Positions 3,832 through 44,253 of a stretch of DNA of 64,000 nucleotides are shown piece by piece. How positions within the stretch are numbered: position 1 is the first letter of the stretch; every line of letters begins with the position of its first letter. The position numbers and the translations under genes are program-made. A model generated the notes under the pieces. The model saw only the letters and a program-made list of their open reading frames with translations, did not search any database and was not told the origin of the DNA. The stretch is from Rebecca billardiae RCC1528 (taxonomy: Eukaryota > Protista > Haptophyta): NCBI GenBank assembly GCA_965240325.2, contig OZ251235.1, positions 2,058,503-2,122,502 of the forward strand. Direction: 5' to 3'.

Positions 3832-4078
3832 GACTCACTAGTCACGACGTGACCCATTAGGGTCCCCTCTCAGGATAGTTCGGCCAGCAGTAGTGGATAC
3901 TCGATCTCATTATAGCTGCTACTTGCTAGCCTGCTAAGCGCCGTGTGTCTCGACCAACTACTGCAGCAGGCGGGGATGCTGCATGTCTAAGTCTTGCGTG
4001 TGCCACAATAATTCACAAATCTGCTCGATCGTGCCGCGTGCTCTCATATGCACATGCACTGGTTCTCCTTGGCGGCTG

Positions 4079-5323: not shown

Positions 5324-5687
5324 GGGCCCGGGGCCGGGTGTGAGACTGTGACTCGGTCGTCAAGCCGCATGCGGACTCAACTGACAACTGTGTCTGTGAT
5401 GAATAAACTGAGCCAGGCGCCGGCGGCTCGGCGGCTGCCAGCAGCGGCCAGTCGCCAGCTAGCAGCCACGGTCAGCCCAGGCCGCGCGGCCGGTCACGGT
5501 GGGCCCACCGAGGGCCCACCGGCCAGTCCGGTTGGGCGGTGGCTGGCTGGTCACGGTGGGCTGGTCAGGTGGCGCAGCGGCAGCAGCACAGCTCGGCACC
5601 GCAGCTCGGTCCGATCAGGTGTCACAGGTGAGGGCGGGCGTCCATGACGACAGAAGGGCGCAGTAGACTAGCGCCGGACGATCCGCC

Positions 5688-6269: not shown

Positions 6270-6866
6270 GGCGCCTGGCGGCTGTTTCCCGGGAACAAGT
6301 TACTTGGTCCGCCAGCAGCCCTCCCGCCCCGCCCTATCAATTCTGCTTGCACCCACCGCTGGCGGCGCTCGTGGCGAGGCCCGCTGGCGGCCCCGCTCGC
6401 GCCTGGCGACAAATACGTACTCGCCCGTAGCTATGGCGCTTGCAGAAGGGCCGCCAGCAGCTCTTCCGCCCCGCAAAATCAATATGCCTTGCACCCGCCG
6501 CTGGCGGCGCTCGTGGCGAGGCCCCGCTGGCAGCCCCGCTCGGGCCTGGCGACAAATACGTACTCGCCCGTAGCTATGCCGCTTGCACGGAAAGGCCGCC
6601 AGCAGCCCTTCCGCCCCGCAAAATCAATGACAATATGCTTTCACCCGCCGCTGGCGGCGCTCGTGGGCGAGGCCCCGGTTGGCGGCCCGCTCGCGCCTCC
6701 AGGGCGACAAAGACATACCGTCTCGCCCGTAGCTACTATCTATGCCGCTTGCAGAAGGGCCGCCAGCGGCCCTGCTTCCGCCCCGCAAAATCAACTATGC
6801 TCGCACCCGCCGCTGGCGGCGCTCGTGGCGAGGCCCGCTGGCGGCCCCGCTCGCGCCTGGCGACAA
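6270..6866. repeat. Tandem repeat, 4 copies of a ~142-164-bp unit
   Basis: Anchor GCTGGCGGCGCTCGTGG recurs at about 6358, 6500, 6650 and 6812. Confidence 0.9.
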
Positions 6867-7065
6867 TATGCAGGCTATGGTCCGGTAGAGGGCGATGGAG
6901 CTGATGAGCGGCACTGGCGCCTGGCGTCCGTGTCACCGTCCTCTTTACTCTACTTATAGTATAGTAGTTAGACAATCACCAGTTATTGTACCAATAACCC
7001 CACATATAGCTACTAGGCAGCACTGCCTCGGAGCAATGCCTCCAATGCTATTCTTATAGCATTGC

Positions 7066-8441: not shown

Positions 8442-8784
8442 GCTGACGACGAGTGCCACGGCTCTCGAGGGCCGTCGCCAGGATTCAGCAGCGGAAGGTA
8501 CTGTACATCAGAATGATGAGCTGATCGTATTACAGTACCCCCATACGCCCGCGCCGCGCCCGCAGGACGTATTGCAGTACTGGCAGCCACATCTGAGGCT
8601 GCAGCCAAGTTCGTATTATTTTGGACCAGAGCAAATAAACTTTACTCAGCAGTCCGGCTGGAGGCTTCGGCCGCCAGCCTGATCACCCGGAGCCCGTTAT
8701 AAAGGGGAATTTTAAAAAAAAAAGTCCATCAGTAGACTGTATCATACTGGTACGGGTAGCCGGCCGCACCAAGCCCGCGTCACG

Positions 8785-13464: not shown

Positions 13465-13478
13465 GAGTGACGAGCCTA

Positions 13479-14109
13479 CAGGGGGTCCCAGATCGGAAGT
13501 TTCCCACTTCGGAAAGGAAGCCATGGCGGGCGTCTGATGCCCGTCCCACGGCAACCCAGCGCCATGGCCGGGTCACCGGGGCGTGGCGTAGGCAGGTTGG
13601 TGCGGTCGTACGAGCGCATGAGCATGAGTGACAGCTTCCTTTCCGACTTTTCGACCACTCTCACGTCCACGTCCACGTCCTCGTGCGACCGGCGCGCGCG
13701 TGAGGCTGCGCATGGGAAGAATGGGAAGTAGGGGCCAGGATCACTGTTCCGACGGCCATGCCGACCTCTTTGGTATGCCTTGCGACGGTGCAGACCAGTC
13801 AATGTTCCGTCTGACCCAACAAACCGCGAGTCTGACGATCAATGTTGACTGCGCGGTAGTCGTGCGACCGCCGTCCGACACGGCTGCCGTGCGAATACGT
13901 GTGCAGCGTGTGCGCGCCTGTCAACGGCGAGGCGATCATCGACCGACATGGCTAGCGAGCTGATCAGGACTAGTAACAACCTTGTCTGGGACCACGCCAC
14001 GCCATTTGGCGACCTCGCCACCGCGCAATGCCCGTCCAGAGGCACGGACGTGCCCGCGCACTACCTGGCCAGCCACCGCCAAAGTGGGGCCCACCATCTG
14101 GACCCCCTG
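13479..14109. mobile_element. Tc1/mariner-type MITE, copy 1 (631 bp)
   Basis: TIRs CAGGGGGTCCCAGAT...ATCTGGACCCCCTG with TA on both sides. Homologous along its length to 53489-54121. Confidence 0.88.
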
Positions 14110-17900: not shown

Positions 17901-18580
17901 TGTGTTGCGCACGCGTCTGGAACCAGCACGCATGGTCTTGGTGCCGGTTGGCGTCGATATACCAGAGCCCACATCACGTGATATGCGCCGCACCAGTCGT
18001 TGCCCGCCAGGCCCTCATCCGGCTTCGCCATGGCCTGCGCGACGGTCGGTCGGATCGCGGCGAGCGGTTGGGCGGGGGTGGGGTCACTCGACGTTTGTGT
18101 CGTGCTTCGTGCAGTTTTTGCGCTGTAGGGCGCGCGGACCACGGCAATCGCATGGCAGCCCTGACCCCAGCAACAACCACTTATTCACCGAACCCCGCCA
18201 GATACCAGCTTCTCGCGCCGCGCGTGTCGCAAGCCGCACACCAGCCATTTCTCGAGCGGTCGGTGCACGCGTGGGCACATTGGCCGATCGACGAGCCGGT
18301 GGCGAGCCTCTACCGCGGGGTAGTAGTGGGGAACACAACCGCACACATGCACATCAACAGCGATCGATCGAACGCGCCGGCGCTGGTCGGCATCGCCGCC
18401 GTCTTCGCTCGCCCCAGGGTCGAGAAGCCCGTCGGGAGCGCACTTTCGCGCGACGCCGCCGTCCGAACGCGCCTCGTCGCGACCGTTCGGGCGACCGGAG
18501 GCCATTTCGGGCTAGACCATTTTCGGCGATTTTCCCGGATATTACCTTACGACACTGGAAAATCGGATCCCTGCGCTGTG
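14983..18580. mobile_element. CAC-terminated non-autonomous TIR element (~3.6 kb; CACTA/Transib-like ends)
   Basis: Left end CACAGCGCAGGATTCCG..TGTCGTAAG (14983-15016) matches the right end reverse complement CACAGCGCAGGGATCCG..TGTCGTAAG (18546-18580). TATAT flanks both sides. Confidence 0.72.
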
Positions 18581-18859
18581 TATATTAGTCGCGTCGTAGT
18601 ACCGTTAATGATTCTGATGCAGCCGCGTTACGAGTGCCATTCCCGCAGTATGCCGCGCCGCTGCTGTGACGATCGACTCACGACTCTGTCGGACCGAGTG
18701 AGCGACTGGCACGGCGTGCCGACCGACACTGACATCACACGTAAGTCATCGGCGGAGTAACGTTTCGCAAGCTAATAACGCTTCATGAGTGCAGTCATCG
18801 CACTCGTTGCCGGCCTGCCGCGCTGGCTGAGCTGGACCGCCCACTGCACTTGTTCGGGC

Positions 18860-20352
18860 TCAGATGGCCGTGGTTGGGTTGAGAGAGGAGAGCTCGATGT
18901 CCTGCGTGCTGTAGAACTCAGCCAGCAGTCGGTAAATGTACGACGCGTGCGTGCCGCCACTGCGCAGGTGGCACCATCCGGCGTGCACGCCGCCGGGCGC
19001 GCGGTGTGTGGAGTGCGTGAGCGGAGGGTCTGCGGGAGGCCGCCGCCGAGCGGGCGCAGCGCGCGCACATATTCGTGATGAAGAGCGAGATCAGCTCGGG
19101 CGCGATGTAGTCGAACGCCGGGCTCGGCGAGTCCGCGGCGAACACGCCCGCGCCCGCGCATTCCCGGCCGGTCGAGTGCGGCTGCCGCGCGCCCTCCGCG
19201 GGCGCACCGTGCTCGTCAGCGCGCGCGCTCGCGTCGAGCTCAAGCGCAGCCGTGTCCTCGTAGGCGAGCACAGACGCGGGCGAGAGGAGCACGTTGAAGT
19301 CGTCCGCGTCGGACGGGAAGATGGGCGTGAGCTGCGGGATGCCCGCGCACACGACGAACGGCACCGAGTGGTGCTGCGCCGCGAGCGCGACCGCGTGTGC
19401 GCCCGCGGGTGCCAGCAGCCCGCCGTCCGCCATCACGGCGTGTGTGCCGATGATCACCTTGTTGATGCGCGCCATGAGCGCGAAGACGGCGGCGTCGGTG
19501 ATCAGGGTCGCCTGTATGCCCGCCTCGGACAGCCGCCGCGCCGTGTCCGCACCCTCGTAAGAAGGGGCCGTGTCCGCCACGATCACCTCGAACGGGCGCT
19601 CCGTGCGCGCCACCCGCTTGAGGAACGCCTCGACGATGCGCGAGCGGCCGAGGGTGAGGATCACCTCGCGCGCGTGGATGTGCTCGGGGGCCTGCTCGGC
19701 GATGTTGACGACGAGCGTGCTCAGCTCGTCGATCAGCTCGTTCACCCCGTCGATGATCGGCTGCTTGATGTCGTGCACCGCGCCGCCCGCCAGGCCGCCA
19801 CTCGCGCCGCGCGTCGCGTCATTAGGCCGCATGTCCGCAGCCAGCAGGTTGTGAAGCGACGGCGCGGTGGAGAAGGTGGCGGGCGGCTGCGACGACGGGG
19901 TCGTGGGCTGCAGGGCGTGCGCGGCGCCGGCATCGCCCCGTCCGCGCTCCTGCTCGCGCGCGAGCCCGTCTATCTCCTCGCGCACGATGTGCAGCACGCG
20001 CCGCACAATGTTGCCGATGCAAAGCTCCTGCGGAGCCGCACGAACCAGCTCGGCGCCGACTGCCTGAAGCCGCTCGATGAGCTGCGCGGGGGTCTGCCAG
20101 CGCGTCTGCACGACCACGCTTCGCATCAGCTCGGCTGTACGCGGCGCCGTCTGGTGGAAGCCCGAGAGCTGCCTGCGCATCGGACGGCGCGCGCGCAAAC
20201 GAGCCGCAGCGCGCGTGCCAGGGCGCGCGTGAGCTGCGAGTCGGCGCGATGGGCAGCGCGCCCTGCTGCGGCCGGGCGCCAACAGCGGCGTACCGTCGCT
20301 TCAGCTTGGTCGTCAAGACGGCGATCTCACGGTCCAGCGCAGCCGATGACAT
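18860..20352 (-). CDS. EIF2B2: Translation initiation factor eIF2B subunit beta
   Basis: Motifs IGNIVRRVL, EHIHAREVILTLGRS, ITDAAVFALMARINKVIIGTHAVMADGG, PAFDYIAPELISLFITN and GGTHASYIYRLLAEFY. Exons 20352-20294, 20172-19069, 18959-18860. Confidence 0.95.
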
Positions 20353-21289
20353 GTCGACGGCGACGAGTCTACGACCACGAGGGCGTGCACGGGTACGATG
20401 GCGGAAGCAATGGCGACGATGGCGGCTCCTCACCAGAACCCCAGCCCCCAAGGCTTGAGGTCCAGTAAGGTCTGGCGTTTGCCACTGGCGACTGCACACG
20501 GCAACAGGGGCGTTTGCGCCCTGTTGTCGTGTGCACACTGGGGCGCAAAAGGGGTCACCCTCAGGGGGTTTCGCACTGCTGTTGCCGTGTGCACCGGCCC
20601 GCTGTGGCCGTGCACACGGCAACAGGGCGCAAACGGCCCTGTTGCCGTGTGCAGGCGTGCATGGCTTGCGATGGCAGCCAGCCGTCAGCAGGGCGCCACG
20701 CCCACTGTTCGTTGGTAGGCTGGCCCGATGGCGTCGCGGAGCTCACGCGTACGGGGGAGGAGGGCATCGACGAGGAGACGACCAAGGGCGAGAAGCAGCA
20801 GGGGGCACGCAGCACGGGGCTCGGAGCATGCCGCGAGCACGCGTGCCTCCACACCGTCGCACATCAACCTTGCTCGTAGCTGTGCGCTGTGCTGCCACTC
20901 ATCTCACCATCGCCCATGCTACGGGCGCGGCCGGGTGGTGGGCATCTACCTGTCGGCGCAGCACTGGCACCGGTGGTCGCCAGACACTCCTCGACTTGCT
21001 CTGCGCGTCACAGCAAGGAGACGGCAGCGGCACAGCTGTGTGAGCTCGCAGATGAAGTGCTCCTCTGCTTTGCGAGGCTGAGAGGCTGAGCACGCGTGGC
21101 GAGCGCTGGCATTCCCCCGCATTCATGAGACCAACAGGTACATAGCCGTGCCCAGGAGCGCAGGACCAACCGCCGGGTGCTGCTTCAAACACCTGCGCCC
21201 CACTCTGCCGGCAGAATGAGGGGCGCTCTACTCTATGCTGCACGCGGCAGCAGCAGCTGGGCCGCTGGGATGGTCCTGCACGGATGACG

Positions 21290-22860
21290 GCGGTCGCCGC
21301 GGCTGACAGCTTGGTGTCACTGGTTCGAAGGGCCTGGACGACGGACGCGCCGAGCGTGGTGACGCTGCTCGATGCGCCCACGGCACTGCCAAGCGCGCTG
21401 GAGCCGCTGCCTCGAGCACTACTGTGCCCGCGCCCAGCTTGGGCAGCAGCAGCTGCGCTCAACTCCACGCCGCGTGCCGTGGCAGCAGCAGGGATGGTGC
21501 CACGGCGGCCGGCGGCGGTCGACGGAGCTGTCGGCTCGGCGGTGCACGCCCGAGGGGCCTGGGCGCTGGGCGCACCGAACGCGGTGCCGCTGCTCGCCTC
21601 GCCCATGGCGCTGGAGCCGCTGCCATCCGACGCTGCTGCGCCCGCGCCCAGCTTGGGCAGCAGCGGCTGCGCTCGACTCCGCGCAGAGTGCGGCGGCAGC
21701 AGCAGGGATGGTGCTACGGTGGGCGACGACGGTCGCTAGAGCTGAAAGCTCGGCGGTGCGCGCCCGAGGGGCGTAGGCGCTGGACGCACCGAACGCGGTG
21801 CCGCTGCTCGCCTCGCCCATGGCGCTCGAGCCGCTGCCATCCGACGCTGCTGCGCACGCGCCAAGCTTGGGCAGCAGCGGCTGCGCTCGACTCCGCGCAG
21901 AGTGCGGCGGCAGCAGCAGGGATGGTGCTACAGTGGGCGACGACGGTCGCTAGAGCTGAAAGCTCGGCGGTGCGCGCCCGAGGGGCCTGGGTGGTGGGCG
22001 CACCGAACGCGGTGCCGCTGCTCGCCTCGCCCATGGCGCTCGAGCCGCTGCCATCCGACGCTGCTGCGCACGCGCCAAGCTTGGGCAGCAGCGGCTGCGC
22101 TCGACTCCGCGCAGAGTGCGGCGGCAGCAGCAGGGATGGTGCTACGGTGGGCGACGACGGTCGCTAGAGCTGAAAGCTCGGCGGTGCGCGCCTGAGGGGC
22201 CTGGGCGCTGGGCGCACCGAACGCGGTGCCGCTGCTCGCCTCGCCCATGGCGCTGGAGCCGCTGCCATCCGACGCTGCTGCGCCCGCGCCAAGCTTGGGC
22301 AGCAGCGGCTGCGCTCGACTCCGCGCAGAGTGCGGCGGCAGCAGCAGGGATGGTGCCACGGCGGGCGGCGGCGGTCGACGGAGCTGTCAGCTCGGTGGTG
22401 CACGTCCGAGGGGCGTAGGCGCTGGACGCACCGAACGCGGTGCCGCTGCTCGCCTCGCCCATGGCGCTGGAGCCGCTGCCATCCGACGCTGCTGCGCCCG
22501 CGCCAAGCTTGGGCAGCAGCGGCTGCGCTCGACTCCGCGCCGCGTGGGGCGGCAGCAGCAGGGATGGTGCTACGGTGGGCGACGACGGTCGCTAGAGCTG
22601 AAAGCTCGGCGGTGTGCGCCTGAGGGGCCTGGGCGGTGGGTGCATTGAGCGCGCTGACGCCTCTCGCCTCGCCCGGCGCGCTCGAGCCGCTGCCATCCGA
22701 TGCTGCCGCGCCCGCGCCCTGTCGCGCCGAGTGCGGCTGCAGCATCAGGGATGGCGCCACGGCGGGCGGGCGGCGGTGCATGCAGCTAGCAGCTCGGTGC
22801 TGCACGCGCGAGGGGCCTGGGCGGCAGACGCGCGCAATGCAGTGACGCTGATGCACGCGT
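21290..22860 (+). repeat. 214-bp tandem satellite array, about 7 copies (left arm)
   Basis: Anchor GAGCCGCTGCC at 21401, 21614, 21828, 22042, 22256, 22470 and 22684. Confidence 0.95.
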
Positions 22861-23639
22861 CAGGCGCGCTGGCCAGCCCCCGGAGCTGTTGCTACGACAC
22901 TTCTTCTGTCCTGCTGCGAGCCGAGCCGCCAGCAGGTTCCGGGGCGGCGGGCAATGCCGGTCAGCTCATATTCATAAGGCCGGCGGCGCAGACCAGTCGT
23001 AGCCCGGCAGGTAGGCGATGCAGAAGTTATCAGCAGCATATCATGCATCGTCATCACTACATCAGCATCCGCCTATAGACGAGTACTACGTAGTATAGAA
23101 CTGCTCTTTATCCGACTAGCCGTTCAGAGCGCGCGCAGTATATACTCCGACTATATACCGGTCGATGCATTATAGCCAGCCCCGGGGCGGCGGCTGTCCG
23201 ACACTCTGCCGTCATGTGCGTATATAAGTGACTCTTACTCCACCTAGCGGTCTATCCGGATCGGTACCCTGGCGGCGGTGTTGTCGTCTGTCCGCCGTCA
23301 CAGCCTGACTCGCGCGCGTAGCTAGTCACTTATCAGTGATGTGATGGTCTCGTCGTCTGCGTCCGGACCGTGTCGACGACAAGTCGTGCTGGGCCCGGCG
23401 GCTCACAGTGTAATAAGTTAGTAGTAGCTAACTCATATCAATGCAAGAGCATCAGTAGTGAGCAGCAGCAGTAGCAGCTCGACTGCTGGCGTCATCACCG
23501 TGCTACACTCCGGCGCGACACGGTCACGGTCAGCTGGTCAGCATCAGTCCGTATACTTACGCCGGGACCGTAGTACTGTAGTTGAGTACGTAGTATACGT
23601 AGTTTTAACGACGCGACCGGTCGGCGCGCGTGCCAAGCA

Positions 23640-26300
23640 GCACTCAGCACCGCCCGACCACCGCCGCCGGCCTGGCCGTGGCACCTCCCTGCTGCTACCA
23701 CCGCATGCGGCGCGAAGCCTCCGGAGCGCAGCTGCTGCCAGGCCTGCCAGCTGCAGCCGTGCAGCGGCGCCGGGGCGCGGGCGCAGCGGGCATCGGATGG
23801 CAGAGGCTCGAGCGCGCTACGGAACGAGGCGAGCGGCTACACCGCGCTCGGTGCGTCCAGCGCCCACGCCTCTCGGGTGGGCACTGCCAAGCTTTCAGCT
23901 GCTGCGGCCGCCCGCCGTGGCACCATCCCTGCTGCTGCTGCCGCACGCGGCGCGGAGTCGAGCGCTGCTGCTGCTGCCCTGGCCGGGCGCGGGCGCAGCA
24001 GCACCGGATGGCAGCGGCTCCAGCGCTATGGGCGAGGCGAGCAGCGGCACCGCGCTCGGTGCGTCCAGCGCCCACGCCCCTCGGGCGTGCACCGCCGAGC
24101 TGCCGGCTGCAGCAACCGCAGCCGCCCGCCGTGCCACCATCCCTGCTGCTGCTGCCGCACGCGGTGCGGAGTCGAGCGCAGCCGCTGCTGCCCAAGCTGG
24201 GCGCGGGCGCAGCAGCGTCGGATGGCAGCGGCTCCAGCGCCATGGGCGAGGCGAGCAGCGGCACCACGCTCGGTGCGCCCAGCGCCCAGGCCCCTCGGGC
24301 GTGCGCTGCCGAGCTTCCAGCTGCGTCGACCGCCGCCGCCCGCCGTGGCACCATCCCTGCTGCTGCCGTCGCACGCGGCGCGGAGTCAGGCGCGGCTGCT
24401 GCTGCCCAAGCTGGGCGCGGGTGCAGCAGCATCGGATGGCAGCGGCTCCAGCGCGCTGCGGGAGGCGAGCGGCGATGGCGCGCTCAGCGCGTCCGCAGCA
24501 CAAGCCCCTCGGGCGTGCGCCGCCGAGCTTCCAGCTGCGTCGACCGCCGCCGCCCGCCGTGGCACCATCCCTGCTGCTGCCGCCGCACGCGGCGCGGAGT
24601 CAGGCGCGGCTGCTGCTGCCCAAGCTGGGCGCGGGTGCAGCAGCATCGGATGGCAGCGGCTCGAGCGCGCTGCGGGAGGCCAGCGGGGACACCGCGCTCG
24701 GTGCGTCCAACGACCAGGCCCCTCGGGCGCACACCGCCGAGCTTTCAGCTCCGTCGACCGCCGCCGCCCGCCGTGGCACCATCCCTGCTGCTGCCGCCGC
24801 ACTCTGCGCGGAGTCGAGCGCAGCTGCTGCTGCCCAAGCTGGGCGCAAGCGCAGCAGCGTCGGATGGCAGGGCTCCAGCGCGCTGCGGGAGGCGAGCGGC
24901 GATGGCGCGCTCAGCGCGTCTGCAGCCCAGGCCCCTCGGGCGTGCGCCGCCGAGCTGCCGGCTGCAGCAACCGCCGCCGCCCACAGTGGCACCATCCCTG
25001 CTGCTGCTGCCGCACGCGGCGCGGAGTCGAGCGCCGCTGCTGCTGCTGCCCCAGCTGGGCGTGGGCGCACCAGCACCGGATGGCAGCGGCTCGAGCGCCA
25101 TGGGCGAGGCGAGCAGTGGCACCGCGCTCGGTGCGTCCAGCGCCCACGCCCCTCGGGCGCACACCGCCGAGCTTTCAGCTCCAGCGACCCACGCCGCCCG
25201 CCGTGGCACCATCCCTGCTGCTGCCCCCGCACTCGGCGCGGAGTCGAGCGCAGCCGCTGCTGCCCAAGCTTGGCGCGGGCGCAGCAGCGTCGGATGGCAG
25301 AGGCTCGAGCGCCATGGGCGAGGCGAGCAGCGGCACCGCGTTCGGTGCGCCCAGCGCCCAGGCCCCTCGGGCGCACACAGCCGAGCTTTCAGCTCCAGCG
25401 ACCGCCGCCGCCCACCGTGGCACCATCCCTGCTGCTGCTGCCGCACGCGGCGCGGAGTCTAGCGCAGCCGCTGCTGCCCAAGCTTGGCGCGGGCGCAGCA
25501 GCGTCGGATCGCAGCGGCTCGAGCGCCATGGGCGAGGCGAGCAGCGGCACCGCGTTCGGTGCGCCCACCACCCAGGCCCCTCGGGCGCACACCGCCGAGC
25601 TTTCAGCTCTAGCGACCGTCGTCGCCCACCGTAGCACCATCCCTGCTGCTGCCGCCGCACGCGGCGCGGAGTCGAGCGCAGCCGCTGCTGCCCAAGCTGG
25701 GCGCGGGCGCAGCAGCGTCGGATGGCAGCGGCTCCAGCGCGCTGCGGGAGGCGAGCAGTGACACCGCGCTCGGTGCATCCAATGCCCGGGCCCCTCGGGC
25801 GCGCACCGCCGAGCTGACAGCTGCGCCGACCCACGCCGCCCGCCATGGCACCATCCCTGCTGCTGCAGCCAATGCGGCGCGGAGTCAAGTGCAGCTGCAG
25901 CTGGGCCCCAGCTGGGCGCGGGCACAGCAGCACCAGATGGCAGCGGCTCCAGCGCGCTGGGCAGTGCCGTGGTCGTGTGGAGCAATGTCACCGCGCTCGG
26001 CGCGTCCATCGACGAGGCCCCTCGAGCGAGCGACACCGAGCTGTCATCTGCGGCGAAAGCCGTCATCCGCCGCGGGACCATTCCAGCAGCTGCTGCCGCA
26101 TGCAGCGCAGACTCGAGCGTGGCTGCCGCTGGTGTTGGCGGCCCGGATGGGCGCGGGTGCAGCATCATCAGGTGCCCGCGACCCCATCGCGGCGGGCGCG
26201 ATGGGCCAGGTCGCTGCGTTTGGCGCGCCATTGCCCAGGCCGTTCAAGCGAGCACCACCGAGCTGTTAGTTGGAGCAACTGCTGCCGCCCGTCATGATAC
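23640..26300 (-). repeat. 214-bp tandem satellite array, about 11 copies, reverse orientation (right arm)
   Basis: Anchor GGATGGCAG or a close variant at 23795, 24006, 24220, 24434, 24648, 24862, 25078, 25292, 25506, 25720 and ~25935. Confidence 0.95.
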
Positions 26301-27178
26301 TGTACGTACTGCTGCTGCAGCATCAACAGCGCCGCTGTTACCAGCAGCGCTGCGCTCGTGTATCCGAAGCAGCACCGCATTGATGGTCCTGCGGTCTGAG
26401 TAGGGGAGTATGCCAGTAGCTCGCATGTACCTGGAGTGCAGTCCATGCCTGTACTGCCTCGCCGAGTACTACTAGAGTAGTAGGACCTCATGTGCTCACG
26501 CAGCTGAGCCGCTGCCGTCTCCTTGCTGTGACGCGCAGAGCAAGTCGAGGAGTGTCTGGCGACCACCGGTGCCAGTGCTGCGCCGACAGGTATATGCCCA
26601 CCACCCGGCCGCGCCCGTAGCATGGGCGATGGTAAGATGAGTGGCAGCACAGCGCACAGCTACGAGCAAGGTTGATGTGCGACGGTGTGGAGGCACGCGT
26701 GCTCGCGGCATGCTCCGAGCCCCGTGCTGCGTGCCCCCTGCTGCTTCTCGCCCTTGGTCATCTCCTCGTCGATGCCCTCCTCCCCCGTACGCGTGAGCTC
26801 CGCGACGCCATCGGGCCAGCCTACCAACGAACAGTGGGCGTGGCGCCCTGCTGACGGCTGGCTGCCATCGCAAGCCATGCACGCCTGCACACGGCAACAG
26901 GGCCGTTTGCGCCCTGTTGCCGTGTGCACGGCCACAGCGGGCCGGTGCACACGGCAACAGCAGTGCGAAACCCCCTGAGGGTGACCCCTTTTGCGCCCCA
27001 GTGTGCACACGACAACAGGGCGCAAACGCCCCTGTTGCCGTGTGCAGTCGCCAGTGGCAAACGCCAAACCTGGCTGTGAGGTCAGGTGCAAGCCGGCCAG
27101 TCCGGTCGTCGTCGGAAAATCGATGGCGTCGGCGGCCGAGCTCGTTTGAATCCGGCTCGCGCTTTTGCTCGGGGCAGC

Positions 27179-29563
27179 ATGGTGCCCAGCCAGGCGCGCT
27201 GGGTGCCTGCGAGCATGCTGGGCGAGCCACCCGCCCCGCTCGTGTCGCACACCGCGACGCTGTGGCGCGACAGGTCCATCATCATCATCGGCGGCGGCCG
27301 GCACACGCGCTCGTCGAGCGATGTCGGTCTGTGGCACATGTCTGCGGCCGTGCACGCGCTCGAGCTCGAGGCGATGCGCTGGGCGCGGCATGAGGTGGGC
27401 GGCGACGAGTTCGTGGGCCGACGTGGCCACTGCGCCGTGCTCTTCGCGCACGCGGACGCCATCGTCGTCTTCGGAGGCGTCGACTCGCACGGCCCGAGCG
27501 GACACGAGCGCACTCGGTGTGACGTGAGCGTGCTTGCGCTCTCGGCGGATGGGCCGTGGACGTGGCGCACCTTCGACGCGTGCGCGAGCTCGCCCTCGCC
27601 CCGGCGCGGCCACTGCGGCTGGCTCTCGCACGACGGCGCCTCGATGCTCGTCTTCGGCGGCTTCTGCGCGCACGGCGCGCACGCCGGCGAGCCGATCGCC
27701 ATTGGCTGGCACGATGCGCAGCTGCACGCGCTGCGCGCCGAGTCGGTCCTTGGGCGTGCGGCGAGTCCGGGCGCGCGGCCGGCGTGGGCGCGGCTCGAGA
27801 CGACGGGTGAGGCGCCGCTCGTCGCGCTCGCGACCGTCGCGCTCACCCACGACCGCGCCCACGCCGTGCTCTGCGGAGGCATCCACCAGCGCGCGGCGGA
27901 CCGTTTTCGCTGCACGGTTGCGGTGCTCGAGCAGCGCTCGCTGGCGTGGTCGCGGGTGCTCGTGCCCGGGCGCATGCCGGCGCGGTACTCTGCGGCCGCG
28001 GCGTTCGTCGGGGATACGCTGCTCCTCTTCGGCGGCACGGATCTGCCCATGTTCGAGAGCGAGCTCGCGCGCCCCGACCACGCGGACATGCGCGCGCTCG
28101 AGCTGGGCGCGGAGCTCCGGGCGGTGCCAGCAGCCGCAGGCGCCGCCGCCTCGGGGGCTGGGGCCGAGGGTGAGGCGGCGCCCTGCTGGGTGCAGCTGGA
28201 CAGGCGGATGGCGCCGCCGCCGCCGCCGCCGGGCGCGGGGTACGCGCCGCACGACGCGCCTGAGCCAGGGGGCGCGCGCTCGCGCGCGGCTGAGGCTTCA
28301 GCCGACGCGCCGGCCGAGCCTGCCTCTGACGCGCCTCAGCTCGCCGAGGACGCACCGCTGCAGCCCGCCCTGACGCTCGAGCTGGGCGGGCGTGTGTACG
28401 CGGCAGGCAGCCGCGACGCCGCGCCCTCGCCGCGTAACGGGATGACGCTCACCGCGGTGCGCGGCGGCGCGACGCTCGTCGTCGTGGGCGGGGGCGTCTT
28501 CCGCGCCGAAGGAGGTGAGTACTTTGACGAGGTGTGGCTCTTCCACATCGGTCCGGACACCGGACTTTCCCGCGCCGGACCCACCGGACCGGAGCCGTTG
28601 GCGCGCGGGCCGGCGGCCGAAGGGGGCGCGCTCTCGACGGGCGGCGGCCGCGCGCCGCCTCACGCCGACGGCGGGCTGAGCGAGGACCTCGGCCGCCTGC
28701 TCGCGAGCGCGCGCGGCGCGGATGTTTGCTTTGAGCTGGACCGGGGCGAGCGCGTGTGCGCGCACGCCCTCGTGCTGGGCGCGCGCTGCGACTACTTCCG
28801 AGCGCTGCTCAGCGGCGGGTTTGGGGAGGCCTGCGCCGGCGGCTCGGGCGCCGAGCGTGTCGTGCGAGTGCCGCACGTGCCCGCGCGCGCGTTCCGCGCT
28901 GCGCTGCGCTTCCTGTACACGGGGCGACTGCCCGGGCTCGAGGGCGGCGCGGAGGGCGCGGGCGCAGACTGCGGCGCGGAGGGCGCGGGCGCAGACTGCG
29001 GCGCGGAGGGCGCGGGCGCAGACTCGGGCACTGGCGCGGCTGCGGAGGCGGCGTGGGCGCAGCTCGCCGCCGAGCTGCTCATGCTCGGCGACATGTGGAC
29101 CTGCGCCGCGCTGCGCGCCGCGGTGCTCGCCCGCATCGAGCGCGCGCTCGGCGCGCGGCACCTCAGCCTCGCGCGCGCGCTCGAGATCGGCCGCGCGACG
29201 GGCGCCACCGAGCTCCTGACCCTCGCCGCCGAGCGTCTCGTCGACGCGCTGCTCTTTCCCGTCCCGCGCGCGGGCGGCGCCGGCTGCGCCGCCGACGGCG
29301 ACGAGGCCGACGCCGCCTCCTCCGACTTGACGCCGGGCGGGGGCAGTGGCGAGGCAGAGGAGGGCGCGCGCGGCGCGCGGCGCGGTGCCGCCGCGGTGCT
29401 GCAGCCGGCGACGCGTGGCGGCGGCGACGCGGACACGCAGCTCGTCCGCAGCGCGGGCCTGGCCGCCGGCGACGTGGGCGACAGGGCCTTTGCTGACGAG
29501 CTGGAGGCTGCGCTGCGGCGTATGGGCTTCCGCCCGACGACGGGCGCAGGTGGCTGCGAATGA
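27179..29563 (+). CDS. Kelch-repeat plus BTB/POZ domain protein (LZTR1-like architecture)
   Basis: Kelch repeats (RRGHCAVL..IVVFGG, PRRGHC..MLVFGG, ARYSAAA..LLLFGG) followed by BTB (ADVCFEL...AHALVLGARCDYFRALLSGGF.E...FRAALRFLYTG). Confidence 0.9.
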   Translation: MVPSQARWVPASMLGEPPAPLVSHTATLWRDRSIIIIGGGRHTRSSSDVGLWHMSAAVHALELEAMRWARHEVGGDEFVGRRGHCAVLFAHADAIVVFGGVDSHGPSGHERTRCDVSVLALSADGPWTWRTFDACASSPSPRRGHCGWLSHDGASMLVFGGFCAHGAHAGEPIAIGWHDAQLHALRAESVLGRAASPGARPAWARLETTGEAPLVALATVALTHDRAHAVLCGGIHQRAADRFRCTVAVLEQRSLAWSRVLVPGRMPARYSAAAAFVGDTLLLFGGTDLPMFESELARPDHADMRALELGAELRAVPAAAGAAASGAGAEGEAAPCWVQLDRRMAPPPPPPGAGYAPHDAPEPGGARSRAAEASADAPAEPASDAPQLAEDAPLQPALTLELGGRVYAAGSRDAAPSPRNGMTLTAVRGGATLVVVGGGVFRAEGGEYFDEVWLFHIGPDTGLSRAGPTGPEPLARGPAAEGGALSTGGGRAPPHADGGLSEDLGRLLASARGADVCFELDRGERVCAHALVLGARCDYFRALLSGGFGEACAGGSGAERVVRVPHVPARAFRAALRFLYTGRLPGLEGGAEGAGADCGAEGAGADCGAEGAGADSGTGAAAEAAWAQLAAELLMLGDMWTCAALRAAVLARIERALGARHLSLARALEIGRATGATELLTLAAERLVDALLFPVPRAGGAGCAADGDEADAASSDLTPGGGSGEAEEGARGARRGAAAVLQPATRGGGDADTQLVRSAGLAAGDVGDRAFADELEAALRRMGFRPTTGAGGCE

Positions 29564-34952: not shown

Positions 34953-36739
34953 CGGGGACGGCGGGCGGGTGAAAGCGCGATCGATGCAAGGCGTGGAAGC
35001 CGGTGAGCTCCAGCTCTCACGCCCGGCTTCAAACGCCGGCCGTTTCGGCGCCGGTCGGCACGTTTGACGTTTCGACCTTTTCCCGGGCTGTCCCGGGGGA
35101 GGAGGAGAAAATTCAGACGAGTCCGGCCAGCGACAACGCCGCCTTGCCAATACGGTAGGGCGCCGGACGCAATAGGGAAGTGACGTCTGTGGGGTCACTT
35201 CCGCTGTGCGCACGAAAGTGAGGCCCCAGAGGTCACTTCCCTTCCCCCTCTTATTGGGGCATTTCTTCTAAGTAGCAAAGTCCGGACGCCCAGCTGGCGA
35301 CCGGTGGGTGGCCACGATGGCGGCCACGCCCGCCACGTGGTGTGGGCGGGACCTTGCAAGATCAATCAAGGCGGATACAAGTGGCGGAGACTTTGATCAT
35401 CGGCTAGCCCCCGTGCAGTGTGCTCTTAGCTACACACTTATCAGAGCTGGCTCGTCTCCTCCCTCAAGACCCGCTGCTCTGTCTAGATTCTGGGTGAGCA
35501 TTGCAGCATTCGCCTGATCCTCATGCGAGGGACGACGACAACTGGCGAGCCGCTAGGCTGCTCAACGGTGACGAAGGCAGCAGTCGAGCTGCCAAGCAAA
35601 GGTCGACGCAGTGTACCTGTGCATGCGATGCGCGGGGCAGCGCGCGCCATCGTATCGCCCGTCGCCGTCGGCCACGCAGCTGCTACCGGCCAGCTGACAT
35701 GATGACGCAGGGCCAGCTGAGCAGCTGCTGTGCCGAGGATCACATGGGTGCCAAGGGCTGGCAGGTGGCGTCATCACGGCGTATGCTGCGTGTGCTGCTC
35801 TCACTTACCGTGGTTGACCGGCTGCTCTGCCAGCGCGTGCCCGTGGCTGTTGCTGGGCAGGCAACGGCGCTCCTCCAGCCCGAGACAGGCTGCGCGCGTG
35901 CTGGTGAGCAGCCAACCTGCAGCTGATGTACAGGCGGCCGCAAGCTGGCATGGCCGAGGGCACGCGGTGGCATGGTGTCTATATTAACCCACGAGCTGCC
36001 GGCCGCGCTCGCACACGCCGTGCAATCGCCTGCCGCTGCCGGGTTTGGGCACACTCGCGGGGGGGGGGCGCTCACCAGGCATTGGTCACACGCCCTCGGC
36101 GCCTCTGCCTAGCTAGCACTTGCAGACACACCGTGCGGCAGCCCAGCGGCCACCATCCGCAGCGGTGGCTGCGAACTGGCCGAAGCTACGGGCGCGCGGC
36201 TGCATACTCTCCTTATTGGAACGTGCGCTGTCAAGTGTGATCGAGCTGACGGCGGACACGCCGGTCGGTGCTGTGTTCTTGCGCTCTCGGGGCCGGTGGT
36301 CATCAGGCGGTGGATACGCAGCCCGCCGCCACGGTGCGCCAGCGCCGCAGCCGACGACTGCGGCTGCGACCAGTGTCGCGCAGCGGCGGCTGAGGGCTGT
36401 CGCGGCGGATGCGGCGACGGCGGCGGCGGCGGCGTGGTCTGGGCATGGGCTGCCGACGCCACGCGCGCACGCTGAGCGCGTGCAGCTCAGGCACAGCGAC
36501 TTCGCGCGCTTATGACCGGCTGTCACCAGGCGGTGGACACGCGGTGCGCCGCCACGGTGCGCCGGCGCGGCCGCAACCGACTGCGGCCGCCGACTGCGGC
36601 CGCGACCAGCGTCGCGCAGCGGCAGCTGAGGGCTGTCGGGGCGGAGCGCGCGTGGCTGCGCGGCGGCGTGGTCTGGGTATGGGCTGCCGACGCTGCGTGC
36701 GCACAGGCGTGCGCACCCAGACCGGCGACGCTGATCGAC

Positions 36740-38460
36740 GCGCCCATCGCGCTGGAGCCGCTGTCATCCGACGCTGCTGTGCCCGCGCCCAGCAGCGCTC
36801 GACTCCGCGCCCAGTGCGGCGGCAGCAGCAGGGATGGTGCCACGGCGGGCGGCGGGCGCTGATGCAGCTGACGGCTCGGCTGTGCGCGCCCGAGGGGCCT
36901 GGGCGACGGGCGCGCCGAGCGCGGTGACGCCTCTCGCCTCGCCCGTCGCGCTGGAGCCGCTGTCATCCGACGCTGCTGCGCCCGCGCCCAGCTTGGGCAG
37001 CAGCGGCTGCGCTCGACTCCGCGCCGCGTGCGGCGGCAGCAGCAGGGATGGTGCCACGGCGGGCGGCGGCGGTCGACGGAGCTGCCAGCTCGGCGGTGCG
37101 CGCCCGAGGGGCGTGGGCGCTGGACGCACCGAGCGCGGTGCCGCTGCTCGCCTCGCCCATCGCGCTGGAGCCGCTGCCATCCGACGCTGCTGCGCCCGCG
37201 CCCAGCTTGGGCAGCAGCGGCTGCGCTCGACTCCGCGCCGCGTGCGGCGGCAGCAGCAGGGATGGTGCCACGGCGGGCGGCGGCGGTCGACGGAGCTGCC
37301 AGCTCGGCGGCGCGCGCCCGAGGGGCGTGGGCGCTGGACGCACCGAGCGCGGTGCCGCTGCTCGCCTCGCCCATCGCGCTGGAGCCGCTGCCATCCGACG
37401 CTGCTGCGCCCGCGCCCAGCTTGGGCAGCAGCGGCTGCGCTCGACTCCGCGCCGCGTGCGGCGGCAGCAGCAGGGATGGTGCCACGGCGGGCGGCGGCGG
37501 TCGACGGAGCTGTCAGCTCGGCGGTGTGCGCCCGAGGGGCCTGGGGGGTGGGCGCACCGAACGCGGTGCCGCTGCTCGCCTCGCCCATCGCGCTGGAGCC
37601 GCTGCCATCCGACGCTGCTGCGCCCGCGCCCAGCTTGGGCAGCAGCGGCTGCGCTCGACTCCGCGCCGCGTGCGGCGGCAGCAGCAGGGATGGTGCCACG
37701 GCGGGCGGCGGCGGTCGACGGAGCTGTCAGCTCGGCGGTGCGCGCCCGAGGGGCGTGGGCGCTGGACGCACCGAGCGCGGTGCCGCTGCTCGCCTCGCCC
37801 ATCGCGCTGGAGCCGCTGCCATCCGACGCTGCTGCGCCCGCGCCAAGCTTGGGCAGCAGCGGCTGCGCTCGACTCCGCGCCGCGTGCGGCGGCAGCAGCA
37901 GGGATGGTGCCACGGCGGGCGACGGGCGCTGATGCAGCTGGCGGCTCGGCGGTGCGCGCCCGAGGGACCTGGGCGACGGGCGCGCCGAGCGCGGTGACGC
38001 CTCTCGCCTCGCCCATCGCGCTGGAGCCGCTGCCATCCGACGCTGCTGTGCCCGCGCCCAGCTTGGGCAGCAGCAGCAGCGCTCGACTCCGCGCCGCGTG
38101 CGGTGGCAGCAGCAGGGATGGTGCCACGGCGGGCGACGGGCGCTGATGCAGCTGGCGGCTCGGCGGTGCGCGCCCGAGGGGCCTGGGCGACGGGCGCGCC
38201 GAGCGCGGTGACGCCTCTCGCCTCGCCCATCGCGCTGGAGCCGCTGCCATCCGACGCTGCTGTGCCCGCGCCCAGCTTGGGCAGCAGCAGCAGCGCTCGA
38301 CTCCGCGCCGCGTGCGGCGGCAGCAGCAGGGATGGTGCCACGGCGGGCGACGGGCGCTGATGCAGCTGGCGGCTCGGCGGTGCGCGCCCGAGGGGCCTGG
38401 GCGACGGACGCGCCGAGGGCGATGACGCCGCCTGCTTCGCCCAGCGCGCCGAGGAGCAGC
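36740..38460 (+). repeat. 214-bp tandem satellite array, about 8 copies (same unit as in 20468-27071)
   Basis: Anchor GAGCCGCTG at 36755, 36954, 37168, 37382, 37596, 37810, 38024 and 38238. Confidence 0.95.
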
Positions 38461-38898
38461 TGCTGCCGTTACTCTGACGAGTCTACGTCTACTGAGATGA
38501 TGGCGTCTTGCAGTACGACAGCATCATATACATCTATATATATATGCTGATATATAGCTATGATGCGCGCAGAGTTCTGAGCAGCTCATGCCGCTGCAAT
38601 GACTCTCAGATCCGCGCTGCGGGCCTGACAAGGATGATGATGCGCGGCCTGCGGCCTGCTGATCGGAGGCGATGACGCCGATGCTGACGATGACGTGCGC
38701 CCGGCCTGTCGATACTCGATGGCGGATCGGACGTCCGAGTCATCATATCGATATCGATATCATCATAATATAATTAATGACGCGATGCTGACACGGCTGA
38801 CTGCTATCATCAGCATATCGATCAGCATCGTCAGGATGACGAACATATCAGTCAGCGACAGCAAGTGGCCTGCGGTGCTCATATATATATATATAGCT

Positions 38899-38930
<32 letters not shown>

Positions 38931-39266
38931 CTCTCTAGTCTCTCTCTCTCTCTCTCTGGTAAGTAATATATAGTATGGACCAGTCGACGGACTGCTAGCT
39001 GCTGCTGCTGATGACGACGGTCGTCGTCCGCAGCAGATGTCATCAGCTGCAGCTATTAGTATATACGTACCAGTACGTACAGTATATACATTAGATTTCT
39101 AGTGCCGTCTCGGGGACGCACCGCTGTCCGCTCCGCCGTGTGATCCGATCCGCCGACCGTCAGTGGCGACGCGCGCGAGTATAAGCTGCGCGCGCGCGTG
39201 CGCTATACTAGCCGGCTGAGTCTCAGTGATGTCCGGTCAGTCAGCAGCATATATATACTGCTCGCC

Positions 39267-39385
<119 letters not shown>

Positions 39386-39440
39386 TGTCAGTGCGTGTCA
39401 TTGATGCTCGCGCAGAGCTCATGGTCGTGGCTCGGTCACG

Positions 39441-39775
39441 CGATGCAGCACATTGCGCTGGTGCCAGGCCGCCACGCGCATGGCCGGACATGGTAACGCG
39501 TTGTACCATGAGTGCACTCGACTGCACAAAGGAGCAGCGGGCCCAGAATCCTACGCATAGCGAGCACGCACGCGCGCAGAGCTCAGGGTGGTGGCCCGGT
39601 CACTCGTCGGATGACGTGAGAGAGGGAGAAGCACACGATGCAGCACATTGTGCTGGTGCCAGGCCGCCGCGCGCATGGCCGGACATGGTAACGCGTTGTA
39701 CCATGAGTGCACTCGACTGCACAAAGGAGCAGCGGGCCCAGAACCCTACGCATAGCGAGCATGCACGCGCGCGCA
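39441..39775. repeat. Direct duplication of ~137 bp (period 195)
   Basis: CGATGCAGCACATTG...GAGCA(C/T)GCACGCGCGCAG begins at 39441 and 39636. Confidence 0.9.
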
Positions 39776-41829
39776 GTGCTGAAGGTCGTAGCCGTCGGGT
39801 GATGACACGAGAGAGAGAGGGAAGCCGGCAAGCATGTGCGCATCTGTTGGTTGAGGCGTGGGCCATGGGCGCATCTTGCTTCAAACACGCACGTATAAGC
39901 ACTCGTCGCCGCCTCCCCGGTCTCGTTCGAACCACAAATGAAGTGGAGACTGCAGGCAGCGAAGAGACGACTGACAACTTCACGCCGGGGATATGACGGG
40001 ATGCTGATGGGTGCCATGGTAGCAACCAAGAGTTCAAGGTTGTCCTGCCATTGCAAACGCTTACAGTACGTGTGGTGTGCATGCCCAAGTGCCAGGCACG
40101 ATGGATCAGTGTCGCTGGCGCCATGCCGCTTGCTTGGTCAAGCTGCACGTCGATCCACACGCGCATGCGCACGCGTCGGGCGAGCGCGCGAGAGACCATC
40201 TGGTTGACGCCAAGCTCAAACATGCACGCTGAGAGCTGCAGAGTTTCAGCTCATGAGGTCCGCAATCCGCATCCTCTTTGAGCACTTGCATCGCCATTGA
40301 GCTCGGGGGAGTCGCGTCCTGGCAACTCGACGCAGGCGATCGGCATCGCTCTCGACACGGGCCCAAAAGTCGGCGGCTTCGCGCCAGGATTCTCATTTCA
40401 TCTCGTCATTCTCATCATTCTCATCATTCCCGGCCCGAATTTTGTTCTTCCCGTCTAGCTCTTTCATCGATTTTCGTCCGCGCCCCTGCCGGCGGGTGCA
40501 AAACACCCTCGCCATCACGCGCGCCGACGGCTCGCCGGCAGAGATCGCATGACGGTCACTCGATGATCAGGCGCGCCTGGTCGCTCACCGCTGAGGGCTC
40601 GCCGTGCAATCGTGCCTGAGAGTGACCTAGGGCTGCCTGAGAGACGGATGACATGGTCAGTAGAGGGATGCCCGAATATTGGATCGAGCAGAATAGTAGG
40701 ACGCGAGTTACGACTTATGCTCGAGTAGATAAGATCACTGATCACCTGGGCAATCCAAGGGCGCCACCAATAGACTGCTCTCGATGCCCAGCTGCTCGAC
40801 ACAGCAGCTGCCCGCATCCAGGTAGACTTTCGGTGTCTCCAGCATCAGAGCCTCAGATTCACACCAGCAATAGCTGTTCTGACCGCCGGCAAAGCAAGCA
40901 ATGGCTGAATGGCACTCTCGGCTTGATCAGGATCACTCCGATCAGTCTTACTACTAGGCTGAGATTCCGACGACGATCCCACTAGCCGAAGACGACTGTG
41001 TGGACTACGCGTGAGGAATCAATCTGCGCCAATCAGCGCGTGCCAATGCCTGCTCCCCCAGAGCAAGCAGCCAAGAAGTCTCGCATGTCACGGCTGCAAT
41101 CACTAAGTGAGCGACTCCAAGAACTCACGTTGAGCCCGAAAGTCTCACTCTGGCAGCTGCCGGATCGATCTCCATGATGCTAGGCAGCCCTTTGAAAACC
41201 ATTCCTTTACGAGAAGCATTCCTGAACGAGGCGTTGAACGAAGGTCGTCTACTGCCATTCCATTGCATCCGCGCATTACAGCAGCAGTGAAGAAGTGGTC
41301 GCCACCGTCACGACGAGCAGCGCCTGTGTGTGACGAACCAGCTGCCCGCCAAGGCACACATGGCGATACTCGTCTCTCGGCAGGAGGAGAGATGCTGTAG
41401 GAGGGGACCACCGCTGTGCGGGAATCGGCACACTCCTCGGGCGTGTGGGATCATCCTGTTGTGGCCTGCCCAATCTCGCTGGGAAAGACATGATGGGCGA
41501 TGGCGGCTCCGGCGACCATTTATTGCAGCAGAATCTTCCGTAAATACGGGCGAGGTACGCGAATCTTCAGAAGCCGCTAGCCGATAAACTACACTGGAAC
41601 AAGGGCGGTACTGGAAGCTCCCGCAAATACGATCAGAGTACGCAGAACTTCAGAAGCCCGCTGGCCAATAGTCGGTCGGAAGCCTTCGCAAATACAATTC
41701 AGTGTACACATCCTGAACCAGAAGAGTATCAGAAGCCTTCACAACCGAGGGCGGGGCTTGACGAGAGCCTGCCGCCCTTGCCGCCACCTTCACAGTCGCA
41801 GTCGCTGACACCGAGTTCGCAGGTGCCCT

Positions 41830-43700
41830 CACCGACGCCCTCGCTGCAGCCCTGATCGCATCCGCCGCCCCGCTGCCACCGCAAACGTCGTCGCCACCGC
41901 CCGCGCAACCGCCCTCGCCCTGGCCGCCTACGCGGCCGCCTCCGAGCCCGTCGCCCGTGAGCCCGATTCAGGCCGCGCCGCCCTCGCCACTGCCGCCACC
42001 ACCGCTGCCCGTGGCGTCGCCAACCTCGTCGCAATCTCTGCTACTGCCACCCTCGTCGTTCTTGCCACCACCTCCGTCGCTCTCGCCCTCGTCAGGCCGC
42101 ACTTTTGCTATGCTACCACCGAGCCCGCCGCAGCAGCTGCCGCGCCGCCGCACCAACACCGCCGCCCAGGCTGCCGCCCTTCCCGCCGCCTCGGCGACCG
42201 CTGGCCGCGGCGACGCTCTCGCCACAACCTCAATGACTGCCACCCCCGTCGCTGCCACCCTCGCCACCTCGCCAGCGCCAGCGCCCCCGCCCTCGTCCTC
42301 GCAAGCGTTGCCGGGCCTGCCACCGCAGCTGCCGGGCCACAACCACCGTCGCCCAGGCCGCTGCCCTCACCGCCGCTGCCGCATCCGCTGACTGCACCGC
42401 TGCCGCCCTCGCCGCCAATTCAGTCGCCACCCCCATCACCGCCCTAACCACCGCCAGCCTCGCCGCGCTCGCCCTCGCCAGCGCCGCCTACGACGCTGCC
42501 GCCGAGCCCGGCACCCGAGCTGCCGCCGCCGCCGCCGCTGCCGCCGCCGCAGCCTAGGCCGCCGCCCTCGCCGCCGCCGCCGCGTCCGCGGGCCGTGCCG
42601 CCCCCGCCCTCGCCACTGCCTTGGGTGCCACCGCCCTCGCCGCCCTCACTGCCGCCAGCGTTGCCGCGCTCCCCAGCGCCGCCTATGCAGGCCGGGCCCG
42701 CCACCCCAGCTGCCGCCGGAGCAGCAGCTGGCGTCGCCCAGGCCGCCGCCCTCGCCGCCGCCGCCGCGCCCGCTTGCCGCGCCGCCGACGCCACCGCCAC
42801 CGCCTCCGTTGCCGCCGCCCTCGCCGCCCTCACCGCCGCCAGCGTTGCCGCGCTCCCCCTCGTCAGCGCCGCCTACGCCGCCGCCGCCGAGCCCGCCACC
42901 CCAGCTGCAGCCGCCGCCGCCGCCGCTGCCGCAGCCACAACCCAGGCCGCCGCCCTTGCCGCCGCCGCCGCGTCTGCGGGCCGTGCCGCCGCAGCCCTCG
43001 CCACTGCCTCGGGTGCCACCGCCCTCGCCCTCACTGCCGCCCTCACTGCCGCCAGCGTTGCCGCGCTCCCCAGCGCCGCCTATGCAGGCCGGGCCCGCCA
43101 CCCCAGCTGCCGCCGGAGCAGCAGCTGGCGTCGCCCAGGCCGCCGCCCTCGCCGCCGCCGCCGCGCCCGCTTGCCGCGCCGCCGACGCCACCGCCACCGC
43201 CTCCGTTGCCGCCGCCCTCGCCGCCCTCACCGCCGCCAGCGTTGCCGCGCTCGCCCTCGCCCGCGCCGCCTACGCCGCCGCCGCCGAGCCCGCCACCCCA
43301 GCTGCAGCCGCCGGCGCCATCGCCGCCCAGGCCGCTGCCCTCGTCACCGTCGCCGCCCCCGCCTCCACTGCCCTTGGGTGGCGCCGCCGCCCTCGTCGCA
43401 GTCTCAGTTGGTGCCGCCCTCACCGCACTCGCTACCGCCTCCTTCGCTCTCGCCCTTGTCAGCGCCACCCTCTCGCTGCCGCCGAGCCTGCCGCCGCAGC
43501 TGCCGCCACCGCCGCCACCGCCGCCCGGGCCGCCACCCTCGCAGCCGCCGCCGCGTCCTCTGGCCGCGTTGCCGCCGCCCTCGCCGCCGCATCCGTCACC
43601 GTCACTCTCGCTGCCATCACCGCCGCCAGCACTGCCGCCCTCGCCGCTGCCCTAGCTGCCGCCCTCGCCGCGTACACCGCTGCCTCCGTCACCTCCGCCC
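41830..43700 (+). pseudogene. Frameshifted Ser-Pro-rich (extensin/pherophorin-like) gene fragment with a ~397-bp internal duplication
   Basis: SPPP/PPSP peptides switch frame repeatedly. CCTATGCAGGCCGGGCCC occurs at ~42682 and ~43079. Confidence 0.5.
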
Positions 43701-44253
43701 TCTTTGTCGTCGCTGCCGGTCCCGGCTTCCTGTCTGCCACAGCCTGGTGTGGTGTGCACGCCGCGTGCTTCCAGCTCTCGCAGATGTGGATGGCAGTCAC
43801 AATTGGGCCTACCGTACGATGCCTGCAAACGCACCCCTGAGCCAGGTGCCGCGTCGAGAAGGGCGTGGCAGCCATGCCACCCCACAGGCGGGCCGCCATC
43901 GTGGCCGCCATCGTGGCCACCGGTCGCCAGCTGGGCGTCCGGACTTGCTACTTAGAAGATATGGCCCAATAAGGGAAGTGACCTCTGGGGCCTCACTTTC
44001 GTGCGCACAGTGGAAGTGACCCCACAGCGGTCACTTCCCTATTGCGTCCTGCGCCCAACTGGGCTGGCCTTGCGCCCTTGCTGCCTTTGCAGAGCTACCG
44101 GACTCTCCAAACTCACGCCCGGCCGCCGAGCGACCGGCCCGGGCGGCGCTTGCAGGCTGGCGCTAAGTCGATGACAGAGTCAGAGAGAGTGTGATTGGGC
44201 GCCCGAAGACGCCAACCTCGGACGGGCGCAGACTCGCAGCGGCTGGCGAGCGC

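Follow-up and report, generated by a model that had tools for sequence, protein, structure and literature searches.

A satellite-bearing foldback element in a divergent promoter of the haptophyte Rebecca billardiae: a probable non-autonomous DNA transposon

Galileo, a P-superfamily element of Drosophila, is flanked by 7-bp duplications and carries, within long terminal inverted repeats (TIRs), tandem repeats of ~140 or 210 bp whose numbers are unequal between the two arms; copies consisting of two TIRs without a transposase reach up to 9 kb (PMC4168063, PMC3573991). The Galileo families have ~40 terminal bp in common, and their binding sites lie further in and are family-specific (PMC3688188). 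Tetris of Drosophila virilis is a foldback element that carries the TIR-220 satellite; it has no ORF, and the units within elements are ~87% alike (PMC4079207). The P elements of the repleta group and BuT5 begin with 3-bp TIRs, which are followed by imperfect sub-TIRs (PMC3698922). Among MULE families, those with a stated length have 9-bp duplications, and the tabulated starts are A or G (PMC8290104).

Here, we analyzed a GC-rich 64,000-nucleotide stretch of contig OZ251235.1 of Rebecca billardiae RCC1528 (hereafter, the window) and characterized an element whose architecture is already known from flies and to which a haptophyte example is now added. We consider this element, at a probability of roughly 0.85, to be a non-autonomous cut-and-paste foldback DNA transposon like Galileo or Tetris that was inserted in a divergent promoter. 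It has the feature set of a non-autonomous TIR transposon (TIRs at both ends, an abutting duplication and no transposase inside) as well as that of the foldback class (long TIRs, inner tandem repeats unequal between the arms and a non-coding middle). It is apparently young. The coordinates of its parts, of a second element in the window and of the neighboring genes are collected in Table 1.

Table 1. Coordinates of the two elements, their parts and the host genes, in positions of the window
Feature	Position	Strand	Description
First element, whole	20463-27076		6,614 bp; CAG...CTG ends
Target-site duplication, left copy	20456..20462		TGAGGTC, 7 bp
Target-site duplication, right copy	27077..27083		TGAGGTC
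Left TIR	20463..21045	+	583 bp; begins CAGTAAGG
Right TIR	26494..27076	-	583 bp; from its end reads CAGCCAGG
Subterminal self-complementary block, left TIR	20492..20654	+	five copies of 15-bp motif
Inner continuation of left arm	21046..21200	+	normal composition; right-hand mirror degraded
Left 214-bp array	21200..22870	+	core 21395-22718; degenerate outer unit; inner unit with 27-bp deletion
Central spacer	22870..23650		unique; TA-rich, homopolymer-poor
Right 214-bp array	23650..26290	-	core 23773-25962 plus degenerate edge units; orientation opposite to left
Degraded mirror of 21046-21200	26290..26493	-	z = 5.4; indel-riddled; spacer-like composition
Second element	35148..44066		GCCTTGC 7-bp duplication; ~170-bp TIRs; single array of 214-bp unit
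eIF2B-beta-like host gene	18918..20352	-	Pfam IF-2B, E 6e-57
Kelch-BTB host gene	27179..29563	+	40% identity to Diacronema lutheri KFE25_007832

Self-comparison of the window returned an inverted match running from 20468 to 27071, the very ends given in an earlier note on this DNA. Outward extension moved both of them by 5 bp, to 20463 and 27076. Together with the alignment of the TIRs, the self-comparison confirmed the foldback build that the note had described, with long TIRs around opposed 214-bp arrays. The TIRs, which had been put at ~578 bp and ~99% identity, are indeed long and nearly identical, with measured values of 583 ungapped bp, 8 mismatches and 98.6% identity, rising to 99.1% from base 11 inward. 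Three of the eight mismatches fall within the first 10 bp (P = 2e-4), where the left and right tips are unlike at positions 4, 5 and 10. An exact 7-bp direct repeat, overlooked previously, flanks the element in register with the TIR ends. Among 20 symmetric registers it was the longest repeat, with nothing longer than 7 bp at the element ends, and the 5-bp and 3-bp matches found beside it are its own shifted sub-matches. The same register test ruled out target models of TA, TAA, TTAA, 8 bp and 9 bp.

Long-TIR MULEs and Drosophila Foldback, the two parallels drawn initially, do resemble the element in having long, internally repetitive TIRs. The foldback-type, non-coding TIR reading stands. The MULE parallel fails because the duplication is 7 bp here and 9 bp in the MULE families with a stated length; the tabulated MULE starts are A or G, and this element starts with CA.

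Inside each end, positions 30-192 form a strong hairpin made of the five motif copies, and the outermost 218 bp folded far better than shuffled sequences (z = -10). These 15-bp subterminal motifs are candidate transposase-binding sites. Further along the TIR, a stretch of about 120 bp chosen by eye (20720-20840 and its right mirror) gave a coding-like score of 0.059 in one frame, against 0.05-0.11 for controls. It is possibly a captured exon fragment; a Pfam scan of the interior frames and an Atlas search of the TIR frame returned no homologue of it, and the TIR reading frame had no credible Atlas match.

The insertion falls in the middle of the gap between two divergent genes, an eIF2B-beta-like gene and a Kelch-BTB gene. 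The start codon of the former, in a spliced model judged exon by exon, is 103 bp from the insertion, and that of the latter, likely the right one, is 95 bp from it. When the element and one copy of the repeat are removed, 205 bp remain between the two start codons. The element thus splits the shared upstream DNA of two genes, one of which encodes a core translation factor. As each start codon retains only about 100 bp of native DNA, either the core promoters are very short or some upstream function is drawn from the TIR. An exact database record of the Kelch-BTB protein was absent; its best relative, Diacronema lutheri KFE25_007832, points to a host that is probably Pavlovales-like but not D. 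lutheri itself. Upstream synteny is lacking at the D. lutheri loci, no DNA in common with either element was found there, and an empty allele was not seen. For the second element, the nearest start codon is a different one, 188 bp downstream. P inserts close to transcription starts, as does Mu (PMC7337890); two sites are too small a sample from which to read a preference for promoters or gene 5' ends.

The second element provides a comparison within the same window. Its GCCTTGC duplication places the ends at CA..TG, in agreement with the register of its TIR; this repeat was found by scanning ~2,250 end pairs, among which one 7-mer match might occur by chance. The body of its TIR (~170 bp) is unrelated to that of the first element, and its one array, at 36711-38463, consists of the same 214-bp unit. 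The tips of the two elements are alike at the left (first, CAGTAAGG; second, CAATACGG) and at the right (first, CAGCCAGG; second, CAGCCCAG), and the asymmetry between the left and right 10-bp tips is common to both. In the second element, as in the first, a hairpin contains a repeated subterminal motif, and this motif is specific to each of the two families. In the window, the tip patterns match both left ends, both right ends and a single unpaired site, a near-match to both patterns at 5524-5538 for which no partner end was found in the window; the patterns were built from these same four ends, and the result therefore shows their rarity and is not independent support. In this pair of elements, a single satellite is clearly seen in two families whose TIR bodies are unrelated, a situation relevant to the origin of satellites and their dispersal with transposons.

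Further repeats were observed within the second element. A strongly C-skewed 397-bp repeat occupies 42119-43318, a 195-bp duplication lies at 39437-39793, and a duplication of roughly 220 bp is located near 36293/36516.

The 7-bp duplication and the like end grammar of the second element indicate a transposon insertion and not a local inversion. We therefore regard it as very improbable that a segment carrying the satellite was duplicated just once, in place and in inverted orientation, and never moved as a unit. Such an event would fit the absence of any other copy: the exact TIR of the first element recurred neither in the window nor in metagenome or viral contigs, and exact-pattern scans of public metagenome and viral contigs with the TIR tip and the monomer gave zero matches. 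However, it leaves the 7-bp duplication, the CA..TG ends and the grammar of the sister family in the window unexplained, and excision of the element with one repeat restores a compact 205-bp divergent promoter.

Among described systems, the closest forms of Galileo are the two-TIR non-autonomous D. willistoni copy 112 and the D. mojavensis F subfamily. Galileo resembles the first element in its 7-bp duplication, long TIRs, unequal tandem arrays, and conserved tips combined with a family-specific inner TIR. Its palindromic target GTANTAC, in contrast, is matched by neither TGAGGTC nor GCCTTGC, and because of this the element is not Galileo proper. In Galileo the binding motif is repeated in the tandem units, whereas here the candidate motif is nearly absent from the arrays (two matches for the first element, each with 3 mismatches and both in edge units). 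The asymmetric tips, the 78% GC of the unit, the satellite common to families with unrelated TIRs and the haptophyte host also set the locus apart. Tetris has the same order of parts as the first element, an outer unique TIR domain followed by a variable ~220-bp array and then a non-coding middle. Its duplications are 8-10 bp and its AT-rich units share 37 bp with their own TIR, whereas the first element has a 7-bp duplication, GC-rich units and no similarity between TIR and monomer. BuT5 and the repleta-group P elements likewise have about 3 identical terminal bases and then an imperfect sub-TIR, but they are about 1 kb long, lack a long TIR or satellite and have 8-9 bp duplications.

The satellite arrays bore out the earlier count of ~7 forward and ~11 reverse copies. 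The left core contains 6.2 copies with 91% matches and the right core 10.2 copies with 86% matches; with the further degenerate edge units, the totals are about 6-8 on the left and 10-12 on the right. A derivation of the satellite from the TIR was considered and found unsupported, as the TIR and the 214-bp monomer have no common word >10 bp.

Identity between the arms is tiered, at 99% in the outer TIR, 83% in the edge monomers and 96-97% in the closest pairs of core monomers. Both arms contain the outer variant monomer reported previously; its copies align at 82.7%, and their differences are transition-rich substitutions (ts/tv 1.7, with 1.4 gaps per 100 bp). An internally deleted inner monomer had also been claimed for both arms, and this did not hold: against the full monomer, a 27-bp deletion is seen in the left unit (22684) and insertions in the right unit (23809), and the two units are alike over only about 60 bp. 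In a monomer tree of 24 full monomers, built without the degenerate edge units and with most other forks weak, four left units group with the three outer right ones in a single supported clade (96/96), apart from the inner right units, whose divergence is greater.

The occurrence of the outer variant monomer in both arms supports an old inverted duplication, and the part of the earlier proposal that posited one is retained on the strength of these mirror-homologous arms. The mixed left/right clade speaks against the simple independent array expansion that was to have followed. Taken with the tiered identity, this clade points to repeated exchange between the arms, or to recent reshuffling, after the duplication. 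An old mirror duplication with inter-arm exchange and unequal gain of units would fit these sequence comparisons better than two independent expansions. For 70% of left-arm bases, the 21-mer around them is perfectly matched by a partner in the right arm, a geometry that would allow a read-through transcript to fold into long dsRNA, as is plausible for such an arrangement.

Two tracts, the central spacer and 26290-26493 in the right arm, differ from the rest. The spacer (about 22870-23650) matches neither the 214-bp monomer nor itself and is not self-complementary, so that the uniqueness attributed to it stands; its length, previously ~750 bp, and its sequence are doubtful, since its composition is an outlier. 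Its TA/(AA+TT) ratio is 2.07; over the window, the median ratio is 0.33 and the 95th percentile 0.89. No coding signal was detected in it, though its bases may be unreliable. A garbled satellite was tested as its source and was unsupported (z below 1). The comparison of 26290-26493 with 21046-21200 was also unlike the other left-right comparisons, with a ts/tv of 0.38 and 12 gap events per 100 bp. From the outlier composition and the transversion- and gap-rich mismatches, we infer that the spacer and 26290-26493 are low-quality consensus. The degradation of 26290-26493 is probably sequencing noise, and the spacer is possibly garbled consensus. If 26290-26493 is read in this way, the true TIR may exceed 583 bp. 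On balance, we favor a partial artefact in which the bases or the length of the spacer are wrong and the element itself is unaffected.

A spacer-like TA-rich, homopolymer-poor tract was also observed at 38460-39270, and by eye similar tracts occur near 3300-3900, 6920-7060, 16600-17100 and 18580-18800. This suggests that, inside repeats, the assembly has stretches where the consensus is of low quality, and findings located there should be read with caution.

Whether the entire palindrome arose as an artefact of assembly or of reads, namely a fold-back chimera, is a different matter. The noise-like composition of the spacer and of 26290-26493, with like tracts elsewhere in the window, would agree with such an origin. 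A chimera would, however, mirror its flanks, which here are two different intact genes, and its arms would be near-identical, whereas those of this element differ by transition-rich substitutions and in unit number. The 7-bp duplication is present, and the tips match those of an independent second element. We thus give this explanation very little weight.

The earlier statement that no transposase is visible was borne out. In 30 interior frames of both elements, neither a transposase nor any other Pfam family was found; across the window, Pfam detected no transposase among 112 of the longer reading frames, all lying outside the arrays. No Rfam family was found in 20300-44200.

For the non-autonomous transposon that we favor, we propose the following mechanism. 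A transposase supplied from elsewhere would bind the family-specific subterminal motifs, cut at the conserved, slightly unlike left and right tips, and cleave the target with a 7-bp stagger. Copying of one subterminal region onto the opposite end may have produced both the long TIRs and the mirrored arrays. Later conversion or repair between the arms, extending short of the outermost 10 bp, would keep the arms alike, and satellite units would be gained or lost via unequal exchange. The 214-bp satellite would then be passenger DNA common to families and not a binding site.

As to the enzyme, our tentative choice, held at slightly less than even odds, is a P-superfamily (Galileo-like) transposase. 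The 7-bp duplications of both elements are within the 7-8 bp range of the P superfamily and Galileo, and the closeness of both elements to a start codon (less than 190 bp) was counted for a P-like mover. Also counted for it were the ~210-bp tandem repeats in the long TIRs of Galileo, the combination in Galileo families of common terminal bases with family-specific binding sites, and the 3-bp TIRs with imperfect sub-TIRs of repleta P and BuT5.

A possible but unlikely alternative is that the same element was moved by Kyakuja (KDZ), its ancestral ends having been dissimilar and its long TIRs being secondary copies of subterminal sequence. Such secondary copying would account for the conserved asymmetric tips; judged by its TIRs, the first element is ambiguous in this respect, having long TIRs yet asymmetric first 10 bp. 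Kyakuja resembles the first element in its 7-bp duplication, CA..TG, dissimilar ends and large size (PMC12730594, PMC8290104). Kyakuja elements with 7-bp duplications and CA..TG ends without TIRs have been described (PMC12730594), and both elements studied here have 7 bp and CA..TG. In Marasmius, 7-bp duplications flank the Kyakuja families, some of which possess TIRs, and unclassified 7-bp families start with CAGTAAA, like the left tip of the first element (PMC8290104). KDZ elements are also large and present in algae (PMC12477816). Nevertheless, Kyakuja elements are without TIRs or have TIRs of up to 400 bp, and the tips diverge beyond 2-3 bases, the published starts CACATA, CAGGGC and CCCA agreeing with those found here only over the first two or three bases. 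No KDZ transposase was seen in the window, and neither satellite arms nor a satellite-bearing foldback form of Kyakuja appeared in the literature examined.

Movement of the same element by a 7-bp-duplicating hAT lineage (hAT7-like) appears less likely still. The hAT7 families have 7-bp duplications and a CAAC start but are known solely from rust fungi in the source that describes them (PMC12730594). CAG starts are found among hAT families, although in the tabulated families the duplications are 8 bp long and the TIRs measure 8-25 bp (PMC8290104). To a mover other than a P-like, Kyakuja/KDZ or hAT7 enzyme we assign only a slim chance.

It is also conceivable, though improbable, that the elements represent an undescribed haptophyte lineage that makes 7-bp duplications and is characterized by asymmetric 10-bp tips, swapped TIR bodies, satellite cargo and targeting of gene 5' ends. 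If so, a satellite would be spreading through promoters aboard several transposon families, and two divergent genes, including a core translation factor, would have gained near-identical upstream DNA.

Other repeats were noted in the window. Long frames at 7182-8459 (-), 8785-10446 (+) and 11641-13554 (-) have no Pfam match and lie in a repeat-rich region between (TA)n tracts. In the self-comparison, 6306-6866 contained about four copies of a ~145-bp tandem repeat unrelated to the 214-bp unit. A 630-bp element is present in two copies that are 87% identical (13479-14109 and 53489-54121); with its CAGGGGG inverted ends and TA duplication, it looks like a Tc1/mariner-like MITE. Finally, 4075-4160 and 4508-4582 form an 80-bp inverted pair that is 81% identical and may be the remains of a small foldback element.
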